A stretch of 64,000 nucleotides of DNA from Epithemia pelagica (Eukaryota > Protista > Bacillariophyta): assembly GCA_946965045.2 (NCBI GenBank), contig OX337233.1, positions 868,001 to 932,000 on the forward strand, given 5' to 3'. The translations under genes were made by a program, and so were the position numbers. Position 1 is the stretch's first letter, and each line of letters opens with the position of its first letter. The notes under the pieces were generated by a model. The model saw only the letters and a program-made list of their open reading frames with translations. It searched no databases and was not told where the DNA came from. Of this stretch, positions 7,214 through 23,700 are shown piece by piece.

Positions 7214-9624
7214 TTATATCCGCGACTGAAAAATGAGGGAGATCTTGAAAAGATCCTAAGATCTGTCACACCAAATCTTGACCATGTCAGCATGGAGATG
7301 CACACTCCGGATCCAAACTTGCATCACTCTTGATCTTCCTAGCCTTTCAAACCCTCCAATGTGACTTGTCCTGCAATGCCTTGCAACACTTGGCCTTGCA
7401 ACGTGCCCTGGGCAAGTTGCAACAACAACAACCATTCAACAGCAACAACGACAACCACAACAGCAACCGCAACAATACCACAATCACAAATAGACCGGGA
7501 CGAGGAAGCACGAGGGGCCCACTTGTCCTCCCCGACGACGACAATGGCCAAGAAGAAAAAGAAACCATCGTTCCAAGCTTCCACGGGTTGGTTGTTGGAT
7601 GCCTTGCGTCAATATGGGCAACTGTATGCGGCCACGACCGCCGTACCAATGACGGCTGCTGCCGCCACCACAATCACTGCGACGTATACACCTGCCTCAA
7701 TGGACCCCCAACTGTTTACTCCAGTCCAAGTGGAGGCGCAAGTCCAAGAGGTGATTCGACAAGACTGGTGTGTACGGAACGAGCCATTCGACAATGGGTT
7801 CCATTCTTATTATTGGTGAACACCCATTCTCATGCATTCCACAAGGGAACGACCAAACTGACAATGGAAGATGGTACTCTGATCCAGTGGAATCTCCTTG
7901 GCCTACCATAAGACGCATCGGCCCCAAGTCTTCTACCTACCTAGTTGGCACGTAAGCCGAGGGCACACGGCCTCGGAAAAACCGGATGCTTTCTTGAGTG
8001 TGTGGAAGGATCTATACAGCCTTGCTCGAATGAATGGTTCCTTCTCTACACTCTACACCTAGAATCATGCACTGGAAGTAGAAGAAGATGAGCTCGTATC
8101 TCGCATTGTAGTAAGGATATACGTGGTCCTCCCTGGAAATCATATAATATTCCATAGTAGTGAAAAACAAAACCCCTGTTTGACTCCTCTAACGAAGAGC
8201 CAACCAACTAATCAATCTCAGCGGCCGCCCACTTGCCAATTCGTCCACGACGACGATCGTCGTCGTCCATCTTGTAGTGTCGTGATTCGTCCTTATCGCA
8301 AAGTTACGTGGGAGTGAGAAAATAATGAGTCACGCATAAAGCGTCAGCAAAACTGATTGAGAGACGACTCGACACCGGGAATTATTAATACTACTAGACC
8401 AAAATTATGCTAGTAGAGGTAGGTGCGTATGTGCGACCATATGTATGGCGGGACTGACCCTCGTCACCTATCTGGTCATCGATCATCGGACAAAGTTTGG
8501 TCAATTGACCGATAACCTTCATTTTTCCGGGGTGAGAGCTGTTTGCTGCTTGCTGCGTGCTCCATCTCAATTGGTATCACGTCAGTAGGGTCAGGGTTTG
8601 GGACGCTCACGGAATGGCCTTAGCGGCCCCTGGCCCCTGGTGGAGATAGCCTCACAGCATGACCCAAAAGCTTGTTTATTATTTGGGATCTACCATCTAC
8701 CTAGCTTCTAGATTACATAACGAAAATAGAACCTTCCTTGTTTCCGGCATATACAATGCTAATGCTGACCGCTTCGAAATCCGTGTATCTGTATCGTTAT
8801 GAGTAATCCAAAAGTGCAAAGCGATTCTATCTGGCATAGGAACCCTGAAAAAAGGGTAATCGCAATGTGCGACCAAATGACGGGACTGGCCGTCACCTAC
8901 AAAAAATGTTCAGCTATCGACCTAGCAAAGTAGCTAGTCTAGTTGATACACTCAGCTATGTCTAGAGGACAGATCCAGAGGATAGACTTTGGCGATTAGA
9001 AGAAGTATAAAGCAACAAAGGCTCAGTGTTTTTGAAACTTCGCAACGTTCAAGACGCTGTTGCTTTCTTTGCTGTTGCTTGTCTTCCTGTCTTCTTCCTG
9101 AGAACCATGTCTTCGCTTTCAGTGTCTTCCTCTGCGCTGGATGCCCTCATCAAACCGTCCCAGCTTCCTGGATCCTTTAGCTTGAATCCTTCTGGTCTTT
9201 ATCCATCATCTGAGAATCCTCATCGCACTACCTTTCCGAACCAGTTCTCTTCTACATCCTTTTTGCACTGTACCTCACCTCCGAACTCCAACCCTCCTTC
9301 CAAAGAGGTGCTTCTACGTTCTTTACAAGACATTTTACACCAGTTGCACTTTGAAGACAAAGCCCCCACCAGTTCAACCCCGTTGGTTCCCTGTACTACC
9401 AAATACGCCAATGCGTCCTCCTTGCCCATCTCCGGTTACCTTGCTGTTGTGCATTTAGACACAACCACTCCCGGTCAGCTTCCTACTTCTTCCCTTCAAG
9501 GCCCCTTTCTGGTGGTACTAGGCCCACGGCCTTTTCCTTCAACAGCACACCTATTTCCTCCAACGTTTTTGGAAACGCCCCTACCACTTACAGTCAAGGC
9601 CAATTTCCTTTCCCCACATCGACG

Positions 9625-11025
9625 TTGGCCCCAGCCTTTGCCTTCCTTAGTGGACATCCCTCCTCCACGCTCCCGAATCTCAACTCTCTGGAGTGGATTC
9701 AAGGCAACCCATCCTCTCTGATGGTTTCTCTTCGAGCCCATTGCGCTCTTTTTTCCACCGTCATTTCTCATTCTATGGATAACCCTCTCCCCATAGACCA
9801 AGGCTGGGCATCTCTTCAGATCCCTACTGTCCCGTCGACTACGACGGACTCCACCCCGCCCTCTGGGCACACAGACTTCAATACGGCTCTTGCCGCTCGA
9901 GTTGAGGCCCTTAAGGCCAAACTCAATGAAGCCAATGAAAGCGTCCTTACGCTTTCCCCACCACTGGTGGACAACTCATCGGCCCCGGCCACGTCTTCAA
10001 CCTGGCTCCTCCTGGCCGCCCATCCCCTTCCGGAACACCATTCTTTGCCTATTGGTTTATTTATTGACCCCAGCAAAGTCCCTACTCCCGATGATCTTAT
10101 CTCGGTAGTTATCTCTTGGTTTAATCAACTGGGCCATCCCCCAACCAGATTGGTTTCCGAAGATCACCTCCGAACCTCTCTCGCGCGGTTATCTAATCCC
10201 TACACAGGTGCATGGCTCTCTGCAATTGCCGCCAACGCCGATCAATTCGCCTGCACATGGCATTCCGATTCTCAGTTGACTGGGGATTACCCCATCCTTT
10301 ATTCTTCCCCGTCCCGCGGTCGTCCCCCACCTTTATCTTCCACCATTCATCCAGCCGATGCGTTATTCACGCATCCCAAGTTTGCCCTCGCGGCAGCCAT
10401 CTTCTTCGATCAACTCTTCAGGGCCAATCTTTCCCTGACCATGGTGAACAAGTTTCATCTTTCTTCCTTCGAGAATTTTCGAAATACAACGAGAAACACC
10501 CAGAATTATTCTTACACAAACCTGGCAATCTCCTCCCATACCTACCATACCTATGCGAACCGGCAGCACAGTCATGGAACACTCAGTACGGCTTTAAAGC
10601 CTTTTCCCCTCGCGCTTCCGGGAACCATCCTCTCCCTTCCTTTGCCCTGGCAATTTTCCCTGGGCTCCCCGAATCCAACGTACCTCCGGCCGACGACCCT
10701 TCCACCCCTCGTCGACCTTCATCCACGGTCGTTGCCGCTCTTCCAAATTTTGGTTTTCGCAATGCCTCCACCCTCAACTGTGGATCCCCCCCCCTCCAAT
10801 ATCTCGTCCTTCACCTTGCGAGCAACCTGTGGTCCGCCCACCCCAACCAACGGCTCCGGCTCCATTCCAACCAACGACACAAGGGTACCCTCCCGCGGAC
10901 ATCAGGCCTACGCCCCCGCCCGTCATAGACCTTACCCATTCGGAAGCTCCGCTTCCTCCTTCCACTGTTCCCTACAATCCCTTGGTAGCCCAACGCCAAC
11001 CTTGGGACTCACATGTCACCAATGA
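9625..11025 (+). CDS. Gag-like ORF1, N-terminal part
   Basis: 466-aa P/S/L-rich ORF with a short coiled-coil (LAARVEALKAKLNEANE) upstream of RT. Assignment is positional. Confidence 0.5.
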   Translation: MAPAFAFLSGHPSSTLPNLNSLEWIQGNPSSLMVSLRAHCALFSTVISHSMDNPLPIDQGWASLQIPTVPSTTTDSTPPSGHTDFNTALAARVEALKAKLNEANESVLTLSPPLVDNSSAPATSSTWLLLAAHPLPEHHSLPIGLFIDPSKVPTPDDLISVVISWFNQLGHPPTRLVSEDHLRTSLARLSNPYTGAWLSAIAANADQFACTWHSDSQLTGDYPILYSSPSRGRPPPLSSTIHPADALFTHPKFALAAAIFFDQLFRANLSLTMVNKFHLSSFENFRNTTRNTQNYSYTNLAISSHTYHTYANRQHSHGTLSTALKPFPLALPGTILSLPLPWQFSLGSPNPTYLRPTTLPPLVDLHPRSLPLFQILVFAMPPPSTVDPPPSNISSFTLRATCGPPTPTNGSGSIPTNDTRVPSRGHQAYAPARHRPYPFGSSASSFHCSLQSLGSPTPTLGLTCHQ

Positions 11026-12316
11026 AGTGGTCTCCCCGTGGTGCCTCCCCATAGAGAACCCCTCGTGGTTCTCAAGCACTCGAATGAGCCACGTTCATTC
11101 ATCCATTTCCTCAACGGCCTACATTCCCACCGTCCACCCGCATCTTGCGCTTGAGCGCGGCCAATTTAGCTTTGAACGCTTTATGCAACAGGACACGGAG
11201 AATCTACCTCCACACATCGTCCAATGGTCCTTTCTCGGCATGATTGTTCTTCATCCCTCCCTTGTCTTGTTTGAACCTGGTCCTCCTACGGCGCTACCGC
11301 AAGCACCCTACGATCGAGACCTATTTCAAACGCCCAGTCTATTAAATAACAACTGGCTCAGGCAAGTGTTGCCGTTCACATCCGCTGAGACTCGAGCGTC
11401 CCATGCAGAACACGCTGCCATTGATCTCCTTGATACGGCGACAGAGGCGTCCCTCCACCCTACGGCCCCCTTTCCCGCCCGCTTCTCTGGATCATTCTAC
11501 CATGCGGAACCAGTACGGAAAGCCCTCCGCACGTTTCGCTTCAGCTCCGGTCTAAACTTACATCACGACGATATCAGATCCCTGCATACTGCCCTTACTC
11601 CGTGGCATTTTTTGTGGTCCATCCCTCTCCCAGTAGAAGGACGAATTTCCGCGGCGGGTATTCCGTCCCCAACCTTAGCCACCCTCTGCCGAAACTTGGT
11701 ATTTTTTCTCAACTGTATGTTTACGAACGACGACTTCTTCCCTGCCTTTCCCCCGGGTTTCTCGCCCTTTCTGCTCCGGAGCCCTCTGGCAGGCAACCTC
11801 CTTTGGGCGGCATCAACACTTGAACACCCTCTCACTCGAGACACGTGGGCTTCCATCGCGTCATCAGATCCTGCCTTTGCCCTCTCCCTCACGGCTGGCG
11901 TCCTGTTTCACATCGGTGAACTCATCCAACAGTTTCTCCGTTGGAGCACCCAAAGCCGGGTCCAGTTGTCTTGCCCTGCCACCGATGACTCTGTCGGCTA
12001 TCTTCCCAAGTGTGCCCTTGTAGCAGATACTACTCCGTTCGGCATTTCCTCCAACAAGCAGTATTGCATTAATTGGAGGTCCACTTTCACTTCAATCTTC
12101 TCCCATCCGACAGTCCTGTCCCATCGCACCACCAATGCCATGGCACCGGTCTTAAAACACTCTCTCCCAACGTATTTCTCGGTCGCCGCTTCTGCCGATC
12201 GCACTAGTGATCGCTCTCGGCGCCGTCCGGCGGAAAACCCCTCTCCTCCGTCGGCCAACGAACGTCCCTCCCGTCGTCAATGCCAAAATCCCTCTGGGTC
12301 TACCCCTCCAGCCTGA
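10829..12316 (+). CDS. Gag-like ORF1, C-terminal part (probable frameshifted continuation)
   Basis: 495-aa ORF overlapping the previous one, starting just after a C homopolymer near 10786-10794. Confidence 0.5.
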   Translation: MVRPPQPTAPAPFQPTTQGYPPADIRPTPPPVIDLTHSEAPLPPSTVPYNPLVAQRQPWDSHVTNEVVSPWCLPIENPSWFSSTRMSHVHSSISSTAYIPTVHPHLALERGQFSFERFMQQDTENLPPHIVQWSFLGMIVLHPSLVLFEPGPPTALPQAPYDRDLFQTPSLLNNNWLRQVLPFTSAETRASHAEHAAIDLLDTATEASLHPTAPFPARFSGSFYHAEPVRKALRTFRFSSGLNLHHDDIRSLHTALTPWHFLWSIPLPVEGRISAAGIPSPTLATLCRNLVFFLNCMFTNDDFFPAFPPGFSPFLLRSPLAGNLLWAASTLEHPLTRDTWASIASSDPAFALSLTAGVLFHIGELIQQFLRWSTQSRVQLSCPATDDSVGYLPKCALVADTTPFGISSNKQYCINWRSTFTSIFSHPTVLSHRTTNAMAPVLKHSLPTYFSVAASADRTSDRSRRRPAENPSPPSANERPSRRQCQNPSGSTPPA

Positions 12317-12813
12317 GCTGCAGAGTGTCGCAAAGCGCAGGTCCCTCTCCTTCATCTCAATGAGACGGGACGGCAACAATACACACATCCAGGTAAGCTT
12401 TTTGCCGCCCATACGGCCGATGTTCCCATCCCGAAATGGGATGGCAAACAATTTTGTTTCATGTTCTGCGACAGGTTGTCCGCCGGAGGTTGTAACCGCT
12501 CGCGTCGCTGCCCTCGCCATCATGTCTGCCTATCTTCTGAAGAGCGCTCCAAGTGGTCACAAACGGCGTTGCGCCCTTTGTGCCTTTGTGGGAGTTTTGT
12601 ACCCACCCACGCTTCCGTTCTTGTCTGGCTGTTACATCTGCATTCCGCGCCTTCATGGCCGATCCACCCTCGAGCACTCCTCCACCCGTTGCTGCCCCCG
12701 CCCCGCCGCCCCCTTCGTGACTACCACTTCCACTGGAGTCCTCCTCACCTTCCGCTCCGACAACCACTCCAATGGTGCCCGACTCCTCCTTCTACCCCAA
12801 CACAGTCCAGTAG

Positions 12814-15162
12814 TTGTCCTTGCCTGTCCTATCCATCAGTCCCGACCTGCCATCGACGATCCCACCGGCTCACCCCTCTCGGCGTCCCACCTTTTCCTCT
12901 CGGGATGTCCTACCCAACGTCTACAATTGTTCAGACCATGCCAAACCACGCCTAAATTGCGTGCTGGCGATCATCCTGCCTTTCCTCACGGACACGGATC
13001 AACGCGTCCTCCATTCTGTGGGGCTGTCCCCGCGTTGGGGCCCTTTGCTCAATTGGCCTCTCTGGCCCCTCACCTTGCATCGGCGACGTTTCGGCTTTGG
13101 AGCCGACAATCCCATGGTCTCCGCATCGTATGCTCCCAATCCCAACAAACCTGGCAGTGCCGATACACCTCTGGATGTGGTTAGTCCGGAACTTCTCGGG
13201 CACTTCTGCTGGGATTTTCTTTCGGTGGTGGACAGGATTAACCTAGTTCGCTCTTCTCCTGTTTTTGTTTTCTACCATCGTCTGCGCCTCTCGGCCGCCC
13301 AGGGTGTCTCTTTGGCGTCTTGTAGATCTCCTCCACGCCTCGATCCGGATGCCCCCCTTCCTTTCCGCAAAGCCTATCTTCTTTCGGTGGCTCTCTGCAA
13401 GCAAAATTTCGTTTACGCTGATATGTTCCGCTGGTTAGGCGGAACATATAACAACAAGCACCGCTCTTTGCAACCGACGTTCGACGTGATCGACCGAGTC
13501 AAAGCCTTTGACCCCCATGACCGAACCTGGAGACTATTTCACCAGGGCGCCCCCCTCACCGGACATTTCTCTTTCGGCCGTACTTCAGTCGCCGCCCGCA
13601 ATCTCTTCGACAACTACAGTGGAGTCTACGAGAATTTTGACACCATCCTTGCCAAGTATAAAAAAGAAGAACAACTGCAGTATCACCTTTTCCTACCGTG
13701 CATTATGTGGCGTTTCTTACCGGGCCTTTTCATCGCCCTGATCAATTGGGTCGCTCCAAAACCACACCAACTTGGCGACACGGGTCGGTTATGTATCGAC
13801 CCCTCTTCCAAGATCAGTGTGTCTGACGACGGCAACCCAAACAGTCCAATTCCGGACGCAGGTCTCGACCCTGATGCAAACCCAAGCGTTGCCTATGGAA
13901 CGGCGTTTGAACGTTTTCTCCGATACGTTTATAATTTGAGATTGGACCACCCGGACGAAGATATCCTTCTGTCCGCCGACGATATCTCGGCGGCCTTTCG
14001 CCGTGTGAATTATAATCCGCAAGTCGCCGTGGTGTTTTCGTGTGTCCTTGATTGCTTCCTCATCATTCCGGTCGGAATGATATTTGGCGCAAAAAATTCT
14101 CCGTCATACTATATGACCCCTGGAGAACTGCGTGCTCACCTAGCACGACACCTTCCTTCCCTCAACGATGCCCGTACTCGCCTTGGCGATTCCATCGTTC
14201 TTCCCCCGCCTCCCACCCCAACCGACGTTGCAACTTTCGTGCGTGTGGAACAAGACGATCTTAACACCGGAGTCAGTGCCCTCCTTGCGTCCTCAAGTCG
14301 GAAACCCGCTTATGCTCCGTTCGTCGATGACACGGGTGGCGCTGCCATTCGAGCAAACATTCACGCCCTCGTGCACAACAGCATCTTGGCGGCCTACATC
14401 ACCTTTGGCGTCCCCGAGGAAGACCCCGGTCGTCCTGAGCCTATAAATCCCGTCAAGTTTGTTCGTCAGCTTTCCCATCAATTAAAGTTTCTTGGGTTTT
14501 TCATTGACACCCGCACGATGTCTATCACGTGGCCTCAACACACACGAGACCAGCTACGACTCTACTTAACCAATCTACTGGACACCGATGAAACCCCTTC
14601 CGGTGGACGACGGCTCTCCCCCCAATCTGCAGCTACCATTCTCGGTCTTGTCCGCCACAGTGCGACAGCCACTCTATTGGGAACATATTACACGCTCAGC
14701 CTGCAGTTCTCGCTCAATGATAATATTCGGTCGTCCGTGGCACAGGGACTGAACCCAGCCTCCACGCGATTTTGGCAGAGGACTCACTTTTCATTAAGCC
14801 GAGAAACCATTCTGGATCTTCGGGCCCTTCTCCATTTCCTTCCGGTATCAGATTCCGATCACTTCTGGTCCCGGCCCATTGGCCTGGTAATTCCTCGCGA
14901 GTCGCAATTCACTGTCCTTGGAGATGCGTCTATTGAGGGTCTTGGGGGCTGGCTCAACGAACGGTTTCCTTTTATGTGGCGGTTGACGAAATCCGACTTA
15001 GAAGCCATCGGTTTCATAATCCCAAAGGATATGCAAGCCATCAAAATCACGGCTGAAACTACCTCCGACACCACCTCCGAACCGTGGCACATCAACTTGT
15101 TAGAGTTCATCGTGCTTATCATTGATTTCTGGTTCATTCAAGTACTGGCACCCCAGCGGTGA
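12814..15162 (+). CDS. Reverse transcriptase plus the N-terminal half of RNase H (DIRS/Ngaro type)
   Basis: Motifs GRLCIDPS, ILLSADDISAAFRR, GMIFGAKNSPSYY, APFVDD, KFLGFFIDT; RNase H motifs GDASIEGLGG and HINLLEF. Confidence 0.92.
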   Translation: MSLPVLSISPDLPSTIPPAHPSRRPTFSSRDVLPNVYNCSDHAKPRLNCVLAIILPFLTDTDQRVLHSVGLSPRWGPLLNWPLWPLTLHRRRFGFGADNPMVSASYAPNPNKPGSADTPLDVVSPELLGHFCWDFLSVVDRINLVRSSPVFVFYHRLRLSAAQGVSLASCRSPPRLDPDAPLPFRKAYLLSVALCKQNFVYADMFRWLGGTYNNKHRSLQPTFDVIDRVKAFDPHDRTWRLFHQGAPLTGHFSFGRTSVAARNLFDNYSGVYENFDTILAKYKKEEQLQYHLFLPCIMWRFLPGLFIALINWVAPKPHQLGDTGRLCIDPSSKISVSDDGNPNSPIPDAGLDPDANPSVAYGTAFERFLRYVYNLRLDHPDEDILLSADDISAAFRRVNYNPQVAVVFSCVLDCFLIIPVGMIFGAKNSPSYYMTPGELRAHLARHLPSLNDARTRLGDSIVLPPPPTPTDVATFVRVEQDDLNTGVSALLASSSRKPAYAPFVDDTGGAAIRANIHALVHNSILAAYITFGVPEEDPGRPEPINPVKFVRQLSHQLKFLGFFIDTRTMSITWPQHTRDQLRLYLTNLLDTDETPSGGRRLSPQSAATILGLVRHSATATLLGTYYTLSLQFSLNDNIRSSVAQGLNPASTRFWQRTHFSLSRETILDLRALLHFLPVSDSDHFWSRPIGLVIPRESQFTVLGDASIEGLGGWLNERFPFMWRLTKSDLEAIGFIIPKDMQAIKITAETTSDTTSEPWHINLLEFIVLIIDFWFIQVLAPQR

Positions 15163-16645
15163 CCTCCCTGGTCTCTACCCTTCGGACGGACAACACCTCA
15201 GCCTTATCATGGCTCAAACATGCTGCCCGCACAAAGCGACCTACGGTACGGCGTCTCGCTCGTCTTTTCCAGTCCATGCTTTCTCATGCACCTGTTCCTG
15301 TAAAGCTTCTTTCTTTACACATAGCCGGGTCGGAAAACCACAACGCCGACCTTCTCTCCCGGCCATCCCTAGCGCCTTCGTGGGCATCCGTTATCGCGCA
15401 GTCGCGGCCTCCCTTGGATCACCGACTCGCCTACCAAGTCCCGCGCAAACTGCTCTCCGTGCTGTTGCTGACCTACAGGTTTCCTGCAACCGCGGATATA
15501 ATCGTCGAAAGAACGACGGCACTGTGGACACTCGCGCCCACCACTTTCATCGGTGGGCCGTCCGATATGGATACACAGTCCAACTACTGTCGTCCTTGAG
15601 CAACAACGAGTGCTTACAAACTCTCGCAATCTACGTTCATGACGTCGCCATTGGGGACAATGTTCACTACGATTCAAAAATGTCCTCGGATACCGTCTCC
15701 AACTACCTACACGCTGCTCGACTCTTCCTTCAGGTCTGTCGTCAGGCTCCGGTCAACACCATGGATCCATCTCGTCCTGGTGCCCTGCACCCTTTGCTGG
15801 CTGATCAACTCGCCTTTCGGTCTCGGTGGTCACGGTCAAATGATCGTCGAGAACCTATCACTGCTCCCACTCTCGCGAACTTATCTTCCCGTCAAGCCCT
15901 CTTGTCGACTGACTCCCCCCTGGGACACACCTATCTTCTTCCTGCCGTTTTTGATTGGTTGTGTCTCGCCTGTTTTACGGGCTCTCGCCCAGGCGAGTAC
16001 GCACAAATGAGTGGATCGAAAACAACCTTCTCCCCCGTTCCCAAGTGCCCCAACGACCCATTTTGGGAAGGCAAGCCTGTGGCGTTCGTCGCCTCGGAAT
16101 TCATGTTTTTGTCACCAACCAACCGTATTATCCCTCACGGTGATCTTCCTACTACGCCACTCGAAGCCGTGGCTTGCGTCCGCATTCGGTTTCGACACGA
16201 TAAGTCGTCCACCAACTTTTCCAAGCGTTCGTTTTACAAGGCAAATCATGCCTTCCTTTGCCCAGTCCGGGCCTCTCGTCGAATTTTCTGTCGGGCCCAC
16301 ACGCTCAAACTCTCGCCCTTCTGGCCACTAGGCTCTTATCGGGACAACAAAGCCGGCAAGACCTTTCTTCTTCGCTCGACAGACATCATTAAAACTCTTC
16401 GTGTTCCCTGTAAGCTGGCCCATCCGTGCCCGAATGACTACCCTCACAGGCACGTTCATCTTCTGGTAGCTCACTCTACCCGAATTACCGCCGCTGTCGC
16501 CCTTGCGAACGCTGGTGCTTCTCCGGATGTTATTGCCCATCGGCTTCGATGGCACCGAGATTCAGTCGAACATTATCTTCGCGACTGCTCTCGTGCTGTG
16601 GGTCTTCTCACCCAACAGGCCATTGCCGGCGTACTCCTAATCTAG
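15122..16645 (+). CDS. Tyrosine recombinase (true start probably downstream, near 15.5 kb)
   Basis: Catalytic-type motifs FTGSRPGEY (R), RHDKS (K), HSTRITAA (HxxR), HRLRW and VEHYLR (Y). Overlaps RNase H, as is typical of DIRS-like elements. Confidence 0.92.
   Translation: MISGSFKYWHPSGDLPGLYPSDGQHLSLIMAQTCCPHKATYGTASRSSFPVHAFSCTCSCKASFFTHSRVGKPQRRPSLPAIPSAFVGIRYRAVAASLGSPTRLPSPAQTALRAVADLQVSCNRGYNRRKNDGTVDTRAHHFHRWAVRYGYTVQLLSSLSNNECLQTLAIYVHDVAIGDNVHYDSKMSSDTVSNYLHAARLFLQVCRQAPVNTMDPSRPGALHPLLADQLAFRSRWSRSNDRREPITAPTLANLSSRQALLSTDSPLGHTYLLPAVFDWLCLACFTGSRPGEYAQMSGSKTTFSPVPKCPNDPFWEGKPVAFVASEFMFLSPTNRIIPHGDLPTTPLEAVACVRIRFRHDKSSTNFSKRSFYKANHAFLCPVRASRRIFCRAHTLKLSPFWPLGSYRDNKAGKTFLLRSTDIIKTLRVPCKLAHPCPNDYPHRHVHLLVAHSTRITAAVALANAGASPDVIAHRLRWHRDSVEHYLRDCSRAVGLLTQQAIAGVLLI
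15159..15599 (+). CDS. RNase H C-terminal half (out of frame with RT)
   Basis: Motifs LRTDNTSALSWL and HIAGSENHNADLLSR. Confidence 0.85.
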   Translation: MTSLVSTLRTDNTSALSWLKHAARTKRPTVRRLARLFQSMLSHAPVPVKLLSLHIAGSENHNADLLSRPSLAPSWASVIAQSRPPLDHRLAYQVPRKLLSVLLLTYRFPATADIIVERTTALWTLAPTTFIGGPSDMDTQSNYCRP

Positions 16646-18501: not shown

Positions 18502-18607
18502 TCAACCAGAGAGATAGTCTTCCTCACTCCAACCAACACACGCTACCAAGCAGGGCGACAGCAGGCAATTGTACCAGACGATTGGGTCAATTGACCGATG
18601 CCCATCA

Positions 18608-18846
18608 GAAAAGGGGAAGGGTTATAGGGATAAGCACGACCACTCGACCAATAGCGCTATTGGTCGAGTGGTTGGGCTTATCCCTATAACCCTTCCCCTT
18701 TTCAAAAGATAACACTGGGGGGCCACATTGGTGGACACTGCCCCAGGAAATCTAACACTGGGGGGCCACATTGGTGGACACTGCCCCAGGAAATCTCCGC
18801 CCCTCCTGGAAGGGACTCGCACTAATTGGTTACCGATGTGGCCCCC
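18608..18846 (+). repeat. Foldback element, copy L: 96-bp palindrome, TIR extension and core (right end missing)
   Basis: GAAAAGGGGAAGGGTTATAGGGATAAGC..ACCACTCGACCAATAGC|GCTATTGGTCGAGTGGT..GCTTATCCCTATAACCCTTCCCCTTTTC at 18608-18703. A 43-bp tandem duplication lies at 18711-18753 and 18754-18796. Confidence 0.95.
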
Positions 18847-18939
18847 TTAACGTGGTAGGTTGGCGCCGAATCTGCGATACCTCATGCTCTACTGGCTTAC
18901 TCTTAGGCTTTACAACGTCAGTCGCTACCAAACTCTACA

Positions 18940-19182
18940 CACTCGCTACAAATTTGCTTTTCCACAGGGACAGGATGCTTGACTTTGGCCAACCTAGAAC
19001 CTGGACGGATCACACCTCGGTCGAAATACTACGCAGTGAAGATGCACTGGTTTCGACAACATATAAGCGATCGGCTGCGAGTCGTCAAAGTTGATACGAC
19101 ACAACAGCGCGCCAACATTCTGACCAAAGGTCTTACCCAATCCACGTTTGAGCACATTCGGAAGCTCCTCTGTGGATGGTGA
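18940..19182 (+). pseudogene. Ty1/copia (CoDi-like) RNase H C-terminal fragment
   Basis: EPGRITPRSKYYAVKMHWFR...DTTQQRANILTKGL...IRKLLCGW*. Confidence 0.9.
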
Positions 19183-19243
19183 CCACCAAATCTATTCTCA
19201 CAATTTACATCTTTAAAGTCCATTATCTCATCCGTGTTCGGCT

Positions 19244-19410
19244 GAGAGGGAGTGAAAAGGGTGCGACCTAATGGAGACTAGCCTAGAGCTGACTCACAAG
19301 GCCATACGTCAACTTGCCCAACCAGCCTCACACTTGGACTTACGCACTACTTGCATATCTTTTAGGAACGTACGAACTAGTTAATCTTCTATCATAATTT
19401 TCCCAATTCA
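19244..19410 (+). mobile_element. Copia polypurine tract and probable 3' LTR
   Basis: GAGAGGGAG at 19244-19252 is followed by TG at 19253. The end at CA 19410 is tentative because no 5' LTR is present for comparison. Confidence 0.55.
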
Positions 19411-19759
19411 TCCCCTTTTCAGGTTATGAGCCCAAGCATCACGCGATAAAGCCTGTTGCGAAAAGACCATAACGATTTCGGTGGACAAGTTCAAGCGTTC
19501 GACGTTGAGGAAATCCGTCTGAACTCTGAACGGCCGTTGAAGTCCAAGACCTACCAGTTTCGATAGCCAGTGTTGCATCGAACCAGGTGGTTTCGTTGCG
19601 ATTTTCCAGTGAATGGAAACCATAGCTGACTTCCTCAGACTCGGAGCAGCTGCTAACAGTGAAGACTCTGACTCTTCAAGAATTCCAGGCTGGTCCTCTG
19701 ACGAATCAAGCTTAAGTAGTATTGAAACAATGAGTACTAAGGTCGTTATAAACGGAGAG

Positions 19760-20080
19760 TAAGCCCGACCACTCGACCAATAGCGCTATTGGTCGAGTGG
19801 TCGGACTTATCCCTATAACCCTTCCCCTTTTCAAAAGATAACACTGGGGGGCCACATTGGTAACCAATTAGCGCGAGTCCCTTCTAGGAGGGGCGGAGAT
19901 TTCCTGGGGCAGTGTCCACCAATGTGGCCCCCCAGTGTTATCTTTTGAAAAGGGGAAAGATTGTAGGGATAAGCCCGACCAATCGACCAATAGCGCTATT
20001 GGTCGAGTGGTCGGGCTTATCCCTACAATCTTTCCCCTTTTCTAGTGGTCGGGCTTATCCCTACAATCTTTCCCCTTTTC
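19760..20080 (-). repeat. Foldback element, copy R (inverted core, outer left arm truncated, extra half-arm)
   Basis: Partial palindrome from 19760, core inverted relative to copy L, full 96-bp palindrome at 19947-20042, duplicated half-arm at 20043-20080. Confidence 0.95.
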
Positions 20081-20763
20081 ACCAACCTTCATTTTTGTTT
20101 TTTGTTCGCGGTTGCATTTTGCTGCTTGCTGCATCTCAATGTCCACTTTTCTCTGTTTGGACACTTTTACCGATGATTATTGTTGCATCTTTTTACACTG
20201 GTACCGAGGGTCATCATCAAAGTCACAAGGAGCCATGTTCTGCAGTGATAAGAGTGCAGAGTGCACCATGTACCACGAGAACCATCAACTGGGTCACAAG
20301 TCACGACGAGAAAGCAACTTTGCTCCATCAGCTCTCTGATTTTTACATTCGGAATTCGCATTTTCATTGTGCATTCCCAGATTTTCAGATGCCGGTTGGC
20401 ATCAATCTTCACTTCTGAGAACTGCCGCATTCGGAGCTCCGCAATTCGGTGCATATCATGAATCATACAACTCTCTATCTGCAAGTCGATGATGGTTTTA
20501 TGCTGGTCATATCACTCGGTACTGGAACATCATGGTGCCTCCTACTATACTTGTTCCGAAACATGTCAACGATGTCGGTTTCTCCCGTGGCTTACTGCCG
20601 TCTGTCATGAACTTGGATCAACTCTCCAAACACAAACTTCGATGGTTGATCCTCTCATAAAATCTGATTCCACAAGTTTGCCGAGCTAACTGCATCGAGA
20701 AACCTTATCAGATTTTGAGTGAGATACCGGCCGAGTAATCAAGAAACCACTGTTTGAAGTACC

Positions 20764-23700
20764 ATGAAGTTGTCAGCTGCCGTCGTTTTTCTTGCTGCGA
20801 CTATCCACAAGAATGCCGCCGTGGAAGATAGTACGCATTTGGTGTTTCCCGCTCCAGAACCGGATCCAAGCTACCAGGTAAGTACAGTCAGCAAACGTTG
20901 TTTCACCACTCGAACAGGTCACACTAATCATGAAGTGCACAGAAATGTGGTCTCGACTATCCAGCCGACCACCATATCGCCTGCCAAAATCCCGACTATC
21001 CGAATTGCGAAGGTTCGAAACACGGAGTTTCGTGGGGAAGGTGCTTTGCGCGGCCTTCTCTCGAGACACTTGCGGTCGATCCTAGGTACCAAAGATGCGG
21101 ACGGGACTTTGGGAACGCTAACTTTGGCAATGAATGTCAGGATCCTGACTACCCTGACTGCATTCGGGGCTTTTGCTATGCAAGGTCAACGAATCCCATG
21201 CCTCTAGATCCTGAAGCTGCCCAACCTGACCCCAGTGGACAGAACTGTCATACGGACTACACCGGTCGGGGCAACATTCATCACTGCCAAGACCCCATCT
21301 ATCCTATTTGCGAAGGTCACATCGTTGGGAAGCAGTGGGGCAAGTGCTTGTCGAATTCCACTGATGGAATTAAACTCTTGGATGACCCCGCAGTGAAAGC
21401 AGGTGTTGTGTACGAGCAAGAAATGATCATTTCCCATAATGAAAGCGATCCAAAACTTACGGTCCATGAAGGTCCTGAAATCGCTGGCGTGGAGACTTGG
21501 AGTGATGCCTTTCACTTTTGTTTGGCAAAGGGCCGAAGGCTCCCATATCGCACCGAGTGGTGCAATGGAAAATGGAATCACTATGTTGGAAGTGATGTTT
21601 GGGGAGGGCGTGTGCCAGGACCCCAGCACAAGTGGACTGCCGTTGTGGACAACTACAATCTAGGCACGCTGCTTCAGCTTGCAGACACTGTTTCTGCGAG
21701 CGGCGTTAGCGAAGTCTGCAAGACGTACCTTCCCGGTCCGATTGTATACCCTGAGAAAAAGATCTTCGATCCGTTCTGCAAGAAACCGGATAGCTGCGAG
21801 GACAAGGACTGTTCGTTCGAATGTCCAGCCGATGCGAAGATGGGCTTCTACCCTGATCCCAATGACTGCCAAGCCGTTTGCTACTGTTCTGGATCTGAGA
21901 TTGGTTCGTTTTGGGAAAAGGTAACAGAAGATGAGACAGAAGTTTGGGATCCATGGTGTCAAGATTCGAGGCCTCTTGACAGAGACAACGTGCCTTTGGG
22001 GTAGGTATCTCACCAGCTGTGAGAGTATACTGTGGTGGTCGTTTTGTGAACGTTCTTCTAACTCATTTTTTTAATTTTGTACACTGCCAGAGGTATGGAC
22101 GGAGGCTGTAAGGCCAAAGATTTATATGTGGATGATAAGAGCTACTGCAATGGCAATTCCAACGAGCAGAGGAAACTTTGGTTGCGTGATGAAGTTCTCA
22201 TTGACCCAGGCTATCAGCCATCCATTGATACCGTCATGTGTGTGAAATCCGCAAAATTTGATCGGTCCGAACTGAACCCCACCTGCGCTGCTGCTTGGGG
22301 TGATCCCCGTAAGTTCACTGTGTTGGCTTGAAGTGCAGCAGTCAAAAACACGACAGTAGAAGGATATTTTTGGTCATCTTACCTACTCGTTTTGTGTCAG
22401 ATATTGTCACCTACGATGGGCTTCGTTACAGCTGCCAAGGACAAGGCGATCATATCCTTGCAAAATCTCTTAACTCGACCTTTGAATTGCAAGGAAAGTT
22501 CAAGAAGCCTTTCGACAATTCGATCAAAGGCGTGACGGTTATGACTGGATTCCATTTGAGAACTGGAAATCTCAATGAACCCGATGTTGAGTTTGATATC
22601 AGTACCTTGCACCGTAAATGGTGGATTGGCGGAAACCCGGTAAGTCACCTCTAAGTGAAGCATGTGTGTCAATAAACAAATCAAGGCAGTGCTCCTAACT
22701 TTTTTGTTCCATTCTTTTCCATCGAAGAACGACGGGATTGATCGGAACTATGGTCAACTTGGCACCCTAACTACTGGTACACCACACCTCCAGTACTTTC
22801 GCTCTCGCGGTGTTCGCATGTTCTACTATCCAAAGTCCCGGATTCAGCTGATGATTACCTACAATTTCCATAGCCGCGATAGACTTGGACACTACATTAA
22901 CATTGAATTGTGTCTTCCCGATGAACTCAAGGAAGAGCGTATAATTGGGTTATTTGGTTCTCCGGATGCCACCAGTGAGAATGATTGGATGGACGAGGCC
23001 GCAGCTGCACTTAACATCACCGATACAAAGTGGGAGGAGGCATTCAACTACTGTAAGGAAAATTGGTGTATCAAAGATGAAAGCAATAACAGATTCCATA
23101 ACAAGTTCACCTGCGACGATGAGTATGACCCTACTCTTGAGAACTTAGTCAAGAATTTGGACCCAACCTCTCCATTGCATGGCATTTGTGGAAGTGATCC
23201 AGAATGTCTCACGGACGGACTGGCAGGCGGTGTGGAAGTTGCAGCGCACACCAAGCGACAGCAGAGTGCCTTGAACATACCTGAAACGCCGGTGGAGCCA
23301 CCGGAGGAACCAGAAGAGGAGAGGATGGAGGAGGAGGAACAGAAAAGGTGTCTGGAGGAGGAAGAACACAAGCCAGAACCTACGAGCAACAAAGGAAGTG
23401 GCAGTGGTGATCCTCATTTCAAGACGGTAAGCTGAAATTTGTTTACTCATTGCATATCTGCTGGCTTTGACACAGCCCTGACAAACTTTCTTTTCTTGTA
23501 CTGTAACGCGTCCAGTGGACTGGTGACAAATTTGACTATCACGGGGAGTGTGATCTTGTATTAGTCGATAACCCCTCTTTCAACAATGGACAAGGAATGA
23601 AGCTTCACATCCGCACAACGCGTGTTCGATATTTTTCTTTTATCGAGAAGATTGCTCTTCAGATTGGCACTGATGTATTGGAGTTTGCCAACGATGCGGA

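Follow-up and report, generated by a model that had tools for sequence, protein, structure and literature searches.

The locus described here lies in a 64,000-nucleotide stretch of the genome of the diatom Epithemia pelagica (assembly GCA_946965045.2, contig OX337233.1, positions 868,001 to 932,000 of the forward strand), which we call the window and whose numbering is used below unless a contig (C) or locus (L) label is given. It carries a composite of two near-perfect palindromes of 96–98 bp (P1 and P3, each with 49+49 nt around the centre AGCGCT, with two arm mismatches in P1 and one in P3), a third, truncated palindrome (P2), interior sequence of a repeat family that we term E, and a fragment of a Ty1/copia element. 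The features are listed below in order, with a and a' denoting the palindrome arms, K a 13-bp motif, S a stem and TSD a target-site duplication.

18602–18606, no strand: left TSD, CCATC, equal at four of five positions to CCAAC at 20082–20086 (other copies have perfect 5-bp TSDs)
18607–18704, plus strand: P1, 98 bp, arms a and a', left end of the array; first base A instead of the T seen in other copies
18705–18977, plus strand: E interior, positions 1 to about 232, 96% identical to the canonical interior at L033:8470–8720
18705–18747 and 18748–18790, plus strand: 43-bp tandem duplication within the E interior, from repeat comparison
18978–19182, plus strand: 3' end of copia pol, last 67 codons and stop, from translation, with at least 150 genomic relatives
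19183–19252, plus strand: copia 3' untranslated stretch with terminal polypurine tract GGCTGAGAGGGAG, directly upstream of the LTR
19253–19421, plus strand: complete copia LTR, 169 bp, TGAAAAGGGT...TCCCCTTTTCA, set by the match limits of 3'-end and 5'-LTR copies
19422–19759, plus strand: copia primer-binding site (PBS) position GGTTATGAGCCCAAGCATCACGC and 315 nt of 5' leader, matching only downstream of 5' LTRs
19760–19833, plus strand: truncated P2, arm a positions 25–49 followed by a complete a', from palindrome and arm mapping
19834–19945, minus strand: mini-interior (K+S 19834–19861, reversed core 19862–19917, S'K' 19918–19945), 98% identical to interior positions 1–99 on the minus strand
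19946–20043, plus strand: P3, 98 bp, with the same three private substitutions in both arms
20044–20081, plus strand: direct duplicate of a' positions 12–49, right end of the array (...CCCCTTTTCA), from arm mapping
20082–20086, no strand: right TSD, CCAAC, a four-of-five match to CCATC

The 22-mer AACACTGGGGGGCCACATTGGT occurs four times in the window, with none expected by chance and none in shuffled sequence, and the 58-nt palindrome core is matched twice (versus zero matches in 100 shuffles). Long inverted arms reach 152 nt at 93% complementarity, 102 nt at 95% and 99 nt at 95%. Folded as single-stranded DNA, the palindromes have predicted energies of −53 to −60 kcal/mol (z about −19 to −21), and the mini-interior has a predicted fold of −38.6 kcal/mol (z −9.3). 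The palindromes, inverted arms and core that a first-pass annotation had placed here are borne out, with none of 100 shuffles reproducing them. The interior next to P1 opens with K and the S stem; the mini-interior, which contains a 56-bp core, is made of the 85 leftmost nucleotides of the interior, capped by K+S in exact inverted form.

The block between the TSDs is 1,475 bp long and splits a sequence whose paralogue at 8499–8575 is continuous. As had been proposed, the flanks of the composite do resemble this uninterrupted motif (GGTCAATTGACCGAT / AACCTTCATTTTT...GCTGCTTGCTGC...ATCTCAAT). The foreign DNA that it encloses amounts to 782 bp (18978–19759) rather than the roughly 0.9 kb first estimated, and the TSD, initially thought not to be evident, is present in imperfect form. 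The right flank (20141–20860, 'X') is itself a repeat, with 98% identical copies at C9:2931814, 2973643 and 3015762, about 42 kb apart, a spacing that suggests a large tandem segmental duplication. Relatives of X form a tandem array with a 613-bp period at C6:1282466–1284718 (90–91% identity) and also occur on C18 (83%), and at one C9 copy an E arm abuts X 113 bp away from the position used in the window. Positions 9625–16645 hold a run of long overlapping plus-strand ORFs (325–782 aa) with no Pfam match at an E-value of 0.001 or below, and a Pfam search of ten neighbouring ORFs, including a recombinase-like ORF nested in a C9 copy of E, returned no family.

Searching the window's own genome (60.5 Mb, 23 contigs) located the E unit at about 17 loci, and a query with a diverged subfamily added one, giving about 18 loci with different flanking DNA at each. 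The unit is therefore not single-copy, and the earlier proposal of a mobile unit with hairpin-forming palindromic ends holds. Intact E is 448 bp long and consists of a 98-bp palindrome P, a 251-bp non-coding interior and a second P; its cleanest representative lies at C7:1247372–1247819 (L033:8372–8819), and a second intact copy, of 476 bp on C4, follows the same plan. The canonical P begins with TGAAAAGGGG and ends with CCCCTTTTCA, and stands as a terminal direct repeat at both ends of the 448-bp and 476-bp copies. The interior, in which no ORF was found, opens with K (AAAGATAACACTG) and closes with its reverse complement K', extending the inverted repeat to 111 bp, and just inside the left end of E a 15–16-nt stem S/S' closes a loop of about 55 nt. 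This P-interior-P arrangement is the basic unit; the unit of about 320 bp described earlier is a symmetric piece unique to the window locus. The flanks of the canonical C7 copy (L033:8300–8371 and 8820–8990) read like an open coding stretch, and this copy may interrupt a gene.

When arm and interior were mapped separately, E was found as intact copies, solo palindromes, palindromes missing most of one arm, three-palindrome arrays and copies split by foreign DNA. Solo palindromes with TSDs lie at C1:160967, C17:707079 and C16:686559, and three-palindrome arrays occur in the window and at C1:3950470–3952664, where the order is P-fragment-P-interior-P. All six intact or solo copies have a perfect 5-bp TSD and TG...CA ends, the duplications being CACAA (C7 copy), GAGTA (C4 copy), GTTAC (2,195-bp copy on C1), CCGTG (solo P on C1), GCCGA (solo P on C17) and CTTGG (62-bp deleted P on C16). 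An assembly artefact, which had been raised as a concern, is rejected by the multiple loci with distinct TSDs. E copies begin with TGAAA, TGACA or TGAAAGG, with TGACAAGG as a variant among the ends, and the commonest lineage ends in ...CCTTGTCA. A subfamily, E2, has an 88-bp perfect palindrome with the ends TGAAAGGAGG...CCTCCTTTCA (L041:7444–7531, L038:8129–8216). Small duplications beside the palindromes recur in other E copies, a pattern that fits hairpin-induced slippage.

Perfect 5-bp TSDs together with TG...CA ends imply that the enzyme responsible is a DDE integrase or transposase cutting with a 5-bp stagger; the combination is a signature of retroviral-type integrases. Longer copies encoding an HUH/Rep, YR or DDE enzyme were not found: genome DNA searches with E1, E2 and the interior recovered only short or nested copies, without a longer relative or a long copy bearing E ends, and the longer copies proved to contain unrelated nested elements. 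Exact-pattern scans for the palindrome in metagenome contigs (two) and viral contigs (one) gave no matches. An Rfam search of the canonical copy returned only sub-threshold generic miRNA-hairpin matches (no ribozyme, tRNA or snRNA), and a Pfam search for RAG1 found nothing. The integrase core (rve) matched 54 times among the 150 of 348 candidates that were scored, in no case near E or inside the 6.2-kb pairs of the T2 family described below.

The foreign DNA in the window belongs to a copia element. Homology to every full-length copia copy begins exactly at 18978; from there, 205 bp code for the C-terminal 67 residues of pol, including the motif usual at the copia C-terminus. Many of the genomic relatives of this peptide terminate open frames of about 1,400–1,630 aa, and in the closest family, whose copies are 97–100% identical to the window pol end, the frames span about 1,610–1,620 aa. 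The 3' ends of full-length copies match the fragment only up to 19421, and their 5' LTR regions match it from 19251/19253 to 19758; since the two matches overlap at 19253–19421, that interval is the whole LTR. The LTR end followed by the string GGTTATGAGCCC was found at 20 loci, a single time in each element and in every case at the 5' LTR, which identifies the remaining 338 bp as the PBS and 5' leader that normally lie downstream of a 5' LTR. The enclosed DNA is thus more than the RNase H end, polypurine tract and LTR reported earlier; the LTR accounts for only 169 bp of it. The fragment shares with Ty1/copia elements the pol C-terminus, the polypurine tract, an LTR bounded by TG...CA and a PBS position common to full-length copies. 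The assignment of the copia PBS to a tRNA is putative; ARAGORN detected no tRNA genes in the window and 24 loci, and an assumed pattern for the anticodon arm of the initiator tRNA matched nowhere in the genome. A third, distant copia at L040:433–1240 (minus strand) has 51% identity in the pol end, the polypurine tract CTGAGAGGGAG and an LTR starting TGTCAC, and this LTR runs directly into the 5' LTR of a copia-B element, so that the two are nested or abutting.

Compared with an integrated element, the order of the fragment (pol end, polypurine tract, LTR, PBS, leader) is circularly permuted. A 1-LTR circle, a tandem pair or minus-strand cDNA that has undergone the first strand transfer would have this layout. 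E and copia meet at two non-homologous junctions placed at arbitrary points, namely interior position ~232 and arm position 25, and the genome search found E joined to copia at no locus other than the window. We interpret the fragment as copia cDNA that was captured or recombined, and not as cargo.

A different relationship between E and copia emerged at their ends. E positions 1–11 and 88–98 correspond to the last 11 nt of the copia LTR inside the composite, and positions 1–9 to its first 9 nt. Between E and the 782-bp copia piece no exact match is longer than these, all others being 9 nt or shorter. A second copia lineage has an LTR of 167 bp (LTR-B, L040:266–432, minus strand, ends TGAAAGGACA...CCTCCTTTCA); it is the 5' LTR of its element, which shows 82% protein identity at the pol end. 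E2 ends match LTR-B ends as E ends match the window copia LTR, giving two helper/hitchhiker end pairs. Recognition by retroviral-type integrases involves about a dozen terminal base pairs, which end in CA, and copia elements typically make 5-bp TSDs. The first-pass statement that the unit fits no TIR superfamily was too strong, given its TG...CA ends, its TSDs and terminal 10–11 nt shared with a neighbouring copia LTR. Similarity to copia ends there: local alignments of the E interior with the copia leader and 3' end scored at or below shuffled means. No PBS follows the 5' repeat of E, which is followed instead by K, and the best match of E to the copia PBS string (11 of 16, inside the arm) is not significant. 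Likewise, no polypurine tract precedes the 3' repeat (the preceding 13 nt are CAGTGTTATCTTT, and the copia sequence directly before its LTR is GAGAGGGAG). No copia LTR with the ending CCTTGTCA and the same PBS occurs in the genome.

The symmetry of the palindromes was analysed by counting paired cells in 14 aligned palindromes. Pairing was retained in 97.6% of cells, and 14 of the 49 pairs (30 cells) were altered on both sides, a level of paired change reached in none of 500 shuffles; slid controls gave one to three such pairs. Lineage variants are common to the left and right palindromes of one element, as in the C4 copy, where the same G-to-A change occupies all four arms, and K and K' have changed together in E2. 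Private mutations in old copies are unpaired, which indicates that arms are not homogenised in place. Palindrome symmetry is restored or selected in the active lineage. An asymmetry at position 45/55 is common to two copies and argues against strict regeneration from one arm in every cycle, that is, the palindrome is not always rebuilt from one arm.

These data establish the feature as real and mobile, and E as a small family of non-coding mobile elements built like a miniature LTR element. We favour, with moderate confidence, the explanation that E is a non-autonomous, TRIM-like, palindrome-ended element using a copia integrase and that the window holds a rearranged three-palindrome array. 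The presumed helper is the co-resident Ty1/copia family, which keeps open pol frames and near-identical copies. Its integrase would bind the mimic ends of E and insert the element with a 5-bp staggered cut. E itself would most likely be copied from RNA by the copia reverse transcriptase because the integrase acts on cDNA inside virus-like particles; as E has neither PBS nor polypurine tract, its priming would have to be unconventional, and the terminal hairpins are obvious candidates. The same two missing sites also count against this explanation, as do the extension of the inverted repeat 13 bp (K) past the palindrome and the co-variation of K and K' in E2, which fit a DNA-type TIR element better. 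The commonest E lineage, with its unmatched ending, and the shared 45/55 asymmetry weigh on the same side.

A more specific proposal, which we consider quite unlikely, is that the terminal palindromes self-prime the copia reverse transcriptase on both strands in a reverse-transcription version of rolling-hairpin replication. In every cycle one arm would give rise to the whole palindrome anew, and this would account for its perfect symmetry, for the absence of primer sites and for double substitutions that agree across the four arms of an element. If true, self-priming would be an undescribed mode of replication for a retroelement parasite.

The copia-dependent explanation is consistent with the likeness of E to TRIMs, which are also shorter than 500 bp and non-coding, with terminal repeats of about 100 bp, TG...CA ends and 5-bp TSDs, and which depend on an autonomous LTR element as we propose for E. 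Further TRIM traits, all matched by E, are solo repeats, arrays of the repeat-interior-repeat-interior-repeat type, a hairpin in the interior and a propensity for nested insertions (PMC6934838). Unlike in TRIMs, compensatory changes keep each terminal repeat of E perfectly palindromic, the inverted repeat continues 13 bp beyond it, PBS and polypurine tract are absent and the likeness to the presumed helper is limited to the terminal 10–11 nt. E lacks two defining TRIM features (PBS and polypurine tract) and has the architectural ones. The searchable part of the literature contained no description of palindromic terminal repeats in TRIMs, nor of such elements in diatoms.

In an alternative explanation, E is a cut-and-paste MITE of an integrase-related DDE superfamily (Ginger2/TDD-like or undescribed), its resemblance to LTR ends reflecting shared ancestry or convergence. 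On this account, the 111-bp TIRs formed by the palindrome and the co-varying K/K', and the missing PBS and polypurine tract, would be expected. TDD-4/5 have been reported with TG...CA ends, long TIRs and 5-bp TSDs (PMC2836005), and Ginger1, Ginger2/TDD and GingerRoot similarly combine TG...CA ends, TIRs of 40–270 bp, short TSDs (5 bp in TDD-4/5) and a retroviral-type DDE enzyme (see PMC2836005, PMC6839031); with its 111-bp TIR and 5-bp TSD, E falls within the Ginger2/TDD pattern of TIRs and 4–5-bp TSDs. The same genome also hosts T2, an abundant TIR family with TG...CA ends and a 5-bp TSD, one copy of which is nested in E. However, the ends of E (TGAAAAGG) differ from those of T2 (TGCCTTCT), and E termini, with TGAAA or TGACA, depart from the TGTNR rule for Ginger termini (PMC2836005). 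No autonomous or otherwise long copy with E ends was found in DNA searches of the genome, Ginger transposases are Gypsy-like whereas the ends of E copy a copia LTR, and convergence fails to explain two separate 10–11-nt matches between an E subfamily and a copia lineage. We regard a MITE origin as unlikely.

The palindromes could also be seen as replicated hairpin telomeres of an integrated linear replicon, with parvovirus-like, rolling-hairpin or telomere-resolvase-type ends. Parvoviral ITRs and rolling-hairpin replicons share with E terminal self-complementary hairpins and an identical sequence at both ends, and the perfection of the E palindromes, the concerted evolution of their arms, the presence of K on the inner side of every palindrome (as expected of concatemer junctions) and the frequent slippage and duplications around them are all compatible with this origin. 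Such a replicon nevertheless seems highly improbable, since TG...CA lies precisely at the outer palindrome edge beside chromosomal 5-bp TSDs, the ends are those of a copia LTR, and the element is 0.45 kb long with no coding capacity and no longer relative in the genome, metagenome contigs or viral contigs. The parvoviral analogy drawn in the first-pass annotation is likewise unsupported, there being no Rep, HUH or other gene and the TSDs pointing to a DDE enzyme. Foldback (FB) elements and palindromic MITEs resemble E in their long snap-back inverted termini, small non-coding copies and local rearrangements. FB termini are arrays of short subrepeats, with 9-bp TSDs in Drosophila; each end of E, by contrast, is a single 49+49-nt palindrome without a subrepeat array and the TSD is 5 bp. 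We attach very little credence to the window being a composite transposon in which two foldback units mobilise copia cargo, even though the 1,475-bp block lies between four-of-five matching TSDs and interrupts a motif that is intact at 8499–8575. The copia piece adjoins E nowhere else and no second E-copia-E block was found, which also speaks against the earlier description of the copia DNA as a passenger; its junctions are non-homologous breakpoints that cut both partners at arbitrary internal points, other E copies carry unrelated nested elements, and the TSD is explained by the original E insertion.

Under the copia-dependent explanation, the history of the window locus may be reconstructed from the order of its parts. 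A single insertion with the TSD CCAWC would have become P1-interior-P2-[K S core S' K']-P3 plus the 38-nt a' duplicate, an array that resembles the one on C1 (P-fragment-P-interior-P). Next, a break at the fragile P2 or close to it would have been sealed with the 782-bp piece of permuted copia cDNA, the repair removing interior positions ~233 to 251 and P2 arm positions 1–24.

If this reading is true, E is a minimal LTR-retrotransposon parasite that keeps only the integrase recognition ends, which track two helper lineages, and in which the rest of the element has been replaced by a palindrome actively kept perfect by evolution. E would then offer a natural system for asking what minimum of sequence suffices for a copia integrase, by what route a retroelement could be copied without PBS and polypurine tract, and why a hairpin is selected. 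In practical terms, recognising such elements, which LTR and MITE finders both miss, should improve the annotation of diatom transposable elements. The window also illustrates how palindromes in a diatom genome act as sites of local fragility and attract insertions.

Foreign DNA is present in 5 of about 10 interior-bearing E copies. Within interior positions 139–159, three copies have received three unrelated insertions in 21 bp (L031:8872–8876, L037:4894–4897 and L032:8599–8605), namely a T2 element, a 4-kb element with 153-bp direct repeats and an insert of about 1.7 kb; two further copies are broken at positions 230–237. The 448-bp E thus contains an insertion hot spot. A C9 copy of E that retains only its inner arms hosts an element of about 9 kb with terminal direct repeats (C9:2922637–2931544; L035:7638–10000 and L007:1–1379), whose 525-aa ORF (L035:8381–9958, minus strand) has tyrosine-recombinase-like motifs by eye and no Pfam match; this element is probably DIRS/Ngaro-like. 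The T2 element nested in E on C1 (C1:3950876–3952470; L003/L020) is 1,595 bp long and non-coding, with a second copy at C1:3947202–3948452. T2 has TIRs of about 250 bp (74% identical), ends TGCC...GGCA, subterminal GGGCACA repeats and the 5-bp TSD CTTAG, and its TIR has at least 49 genomic matches, many at 98–100%. Four T2 TIR pairs, on C7, C6, C2 and C8, are spaced about 6.2 kb apart and may be autonomous copies.
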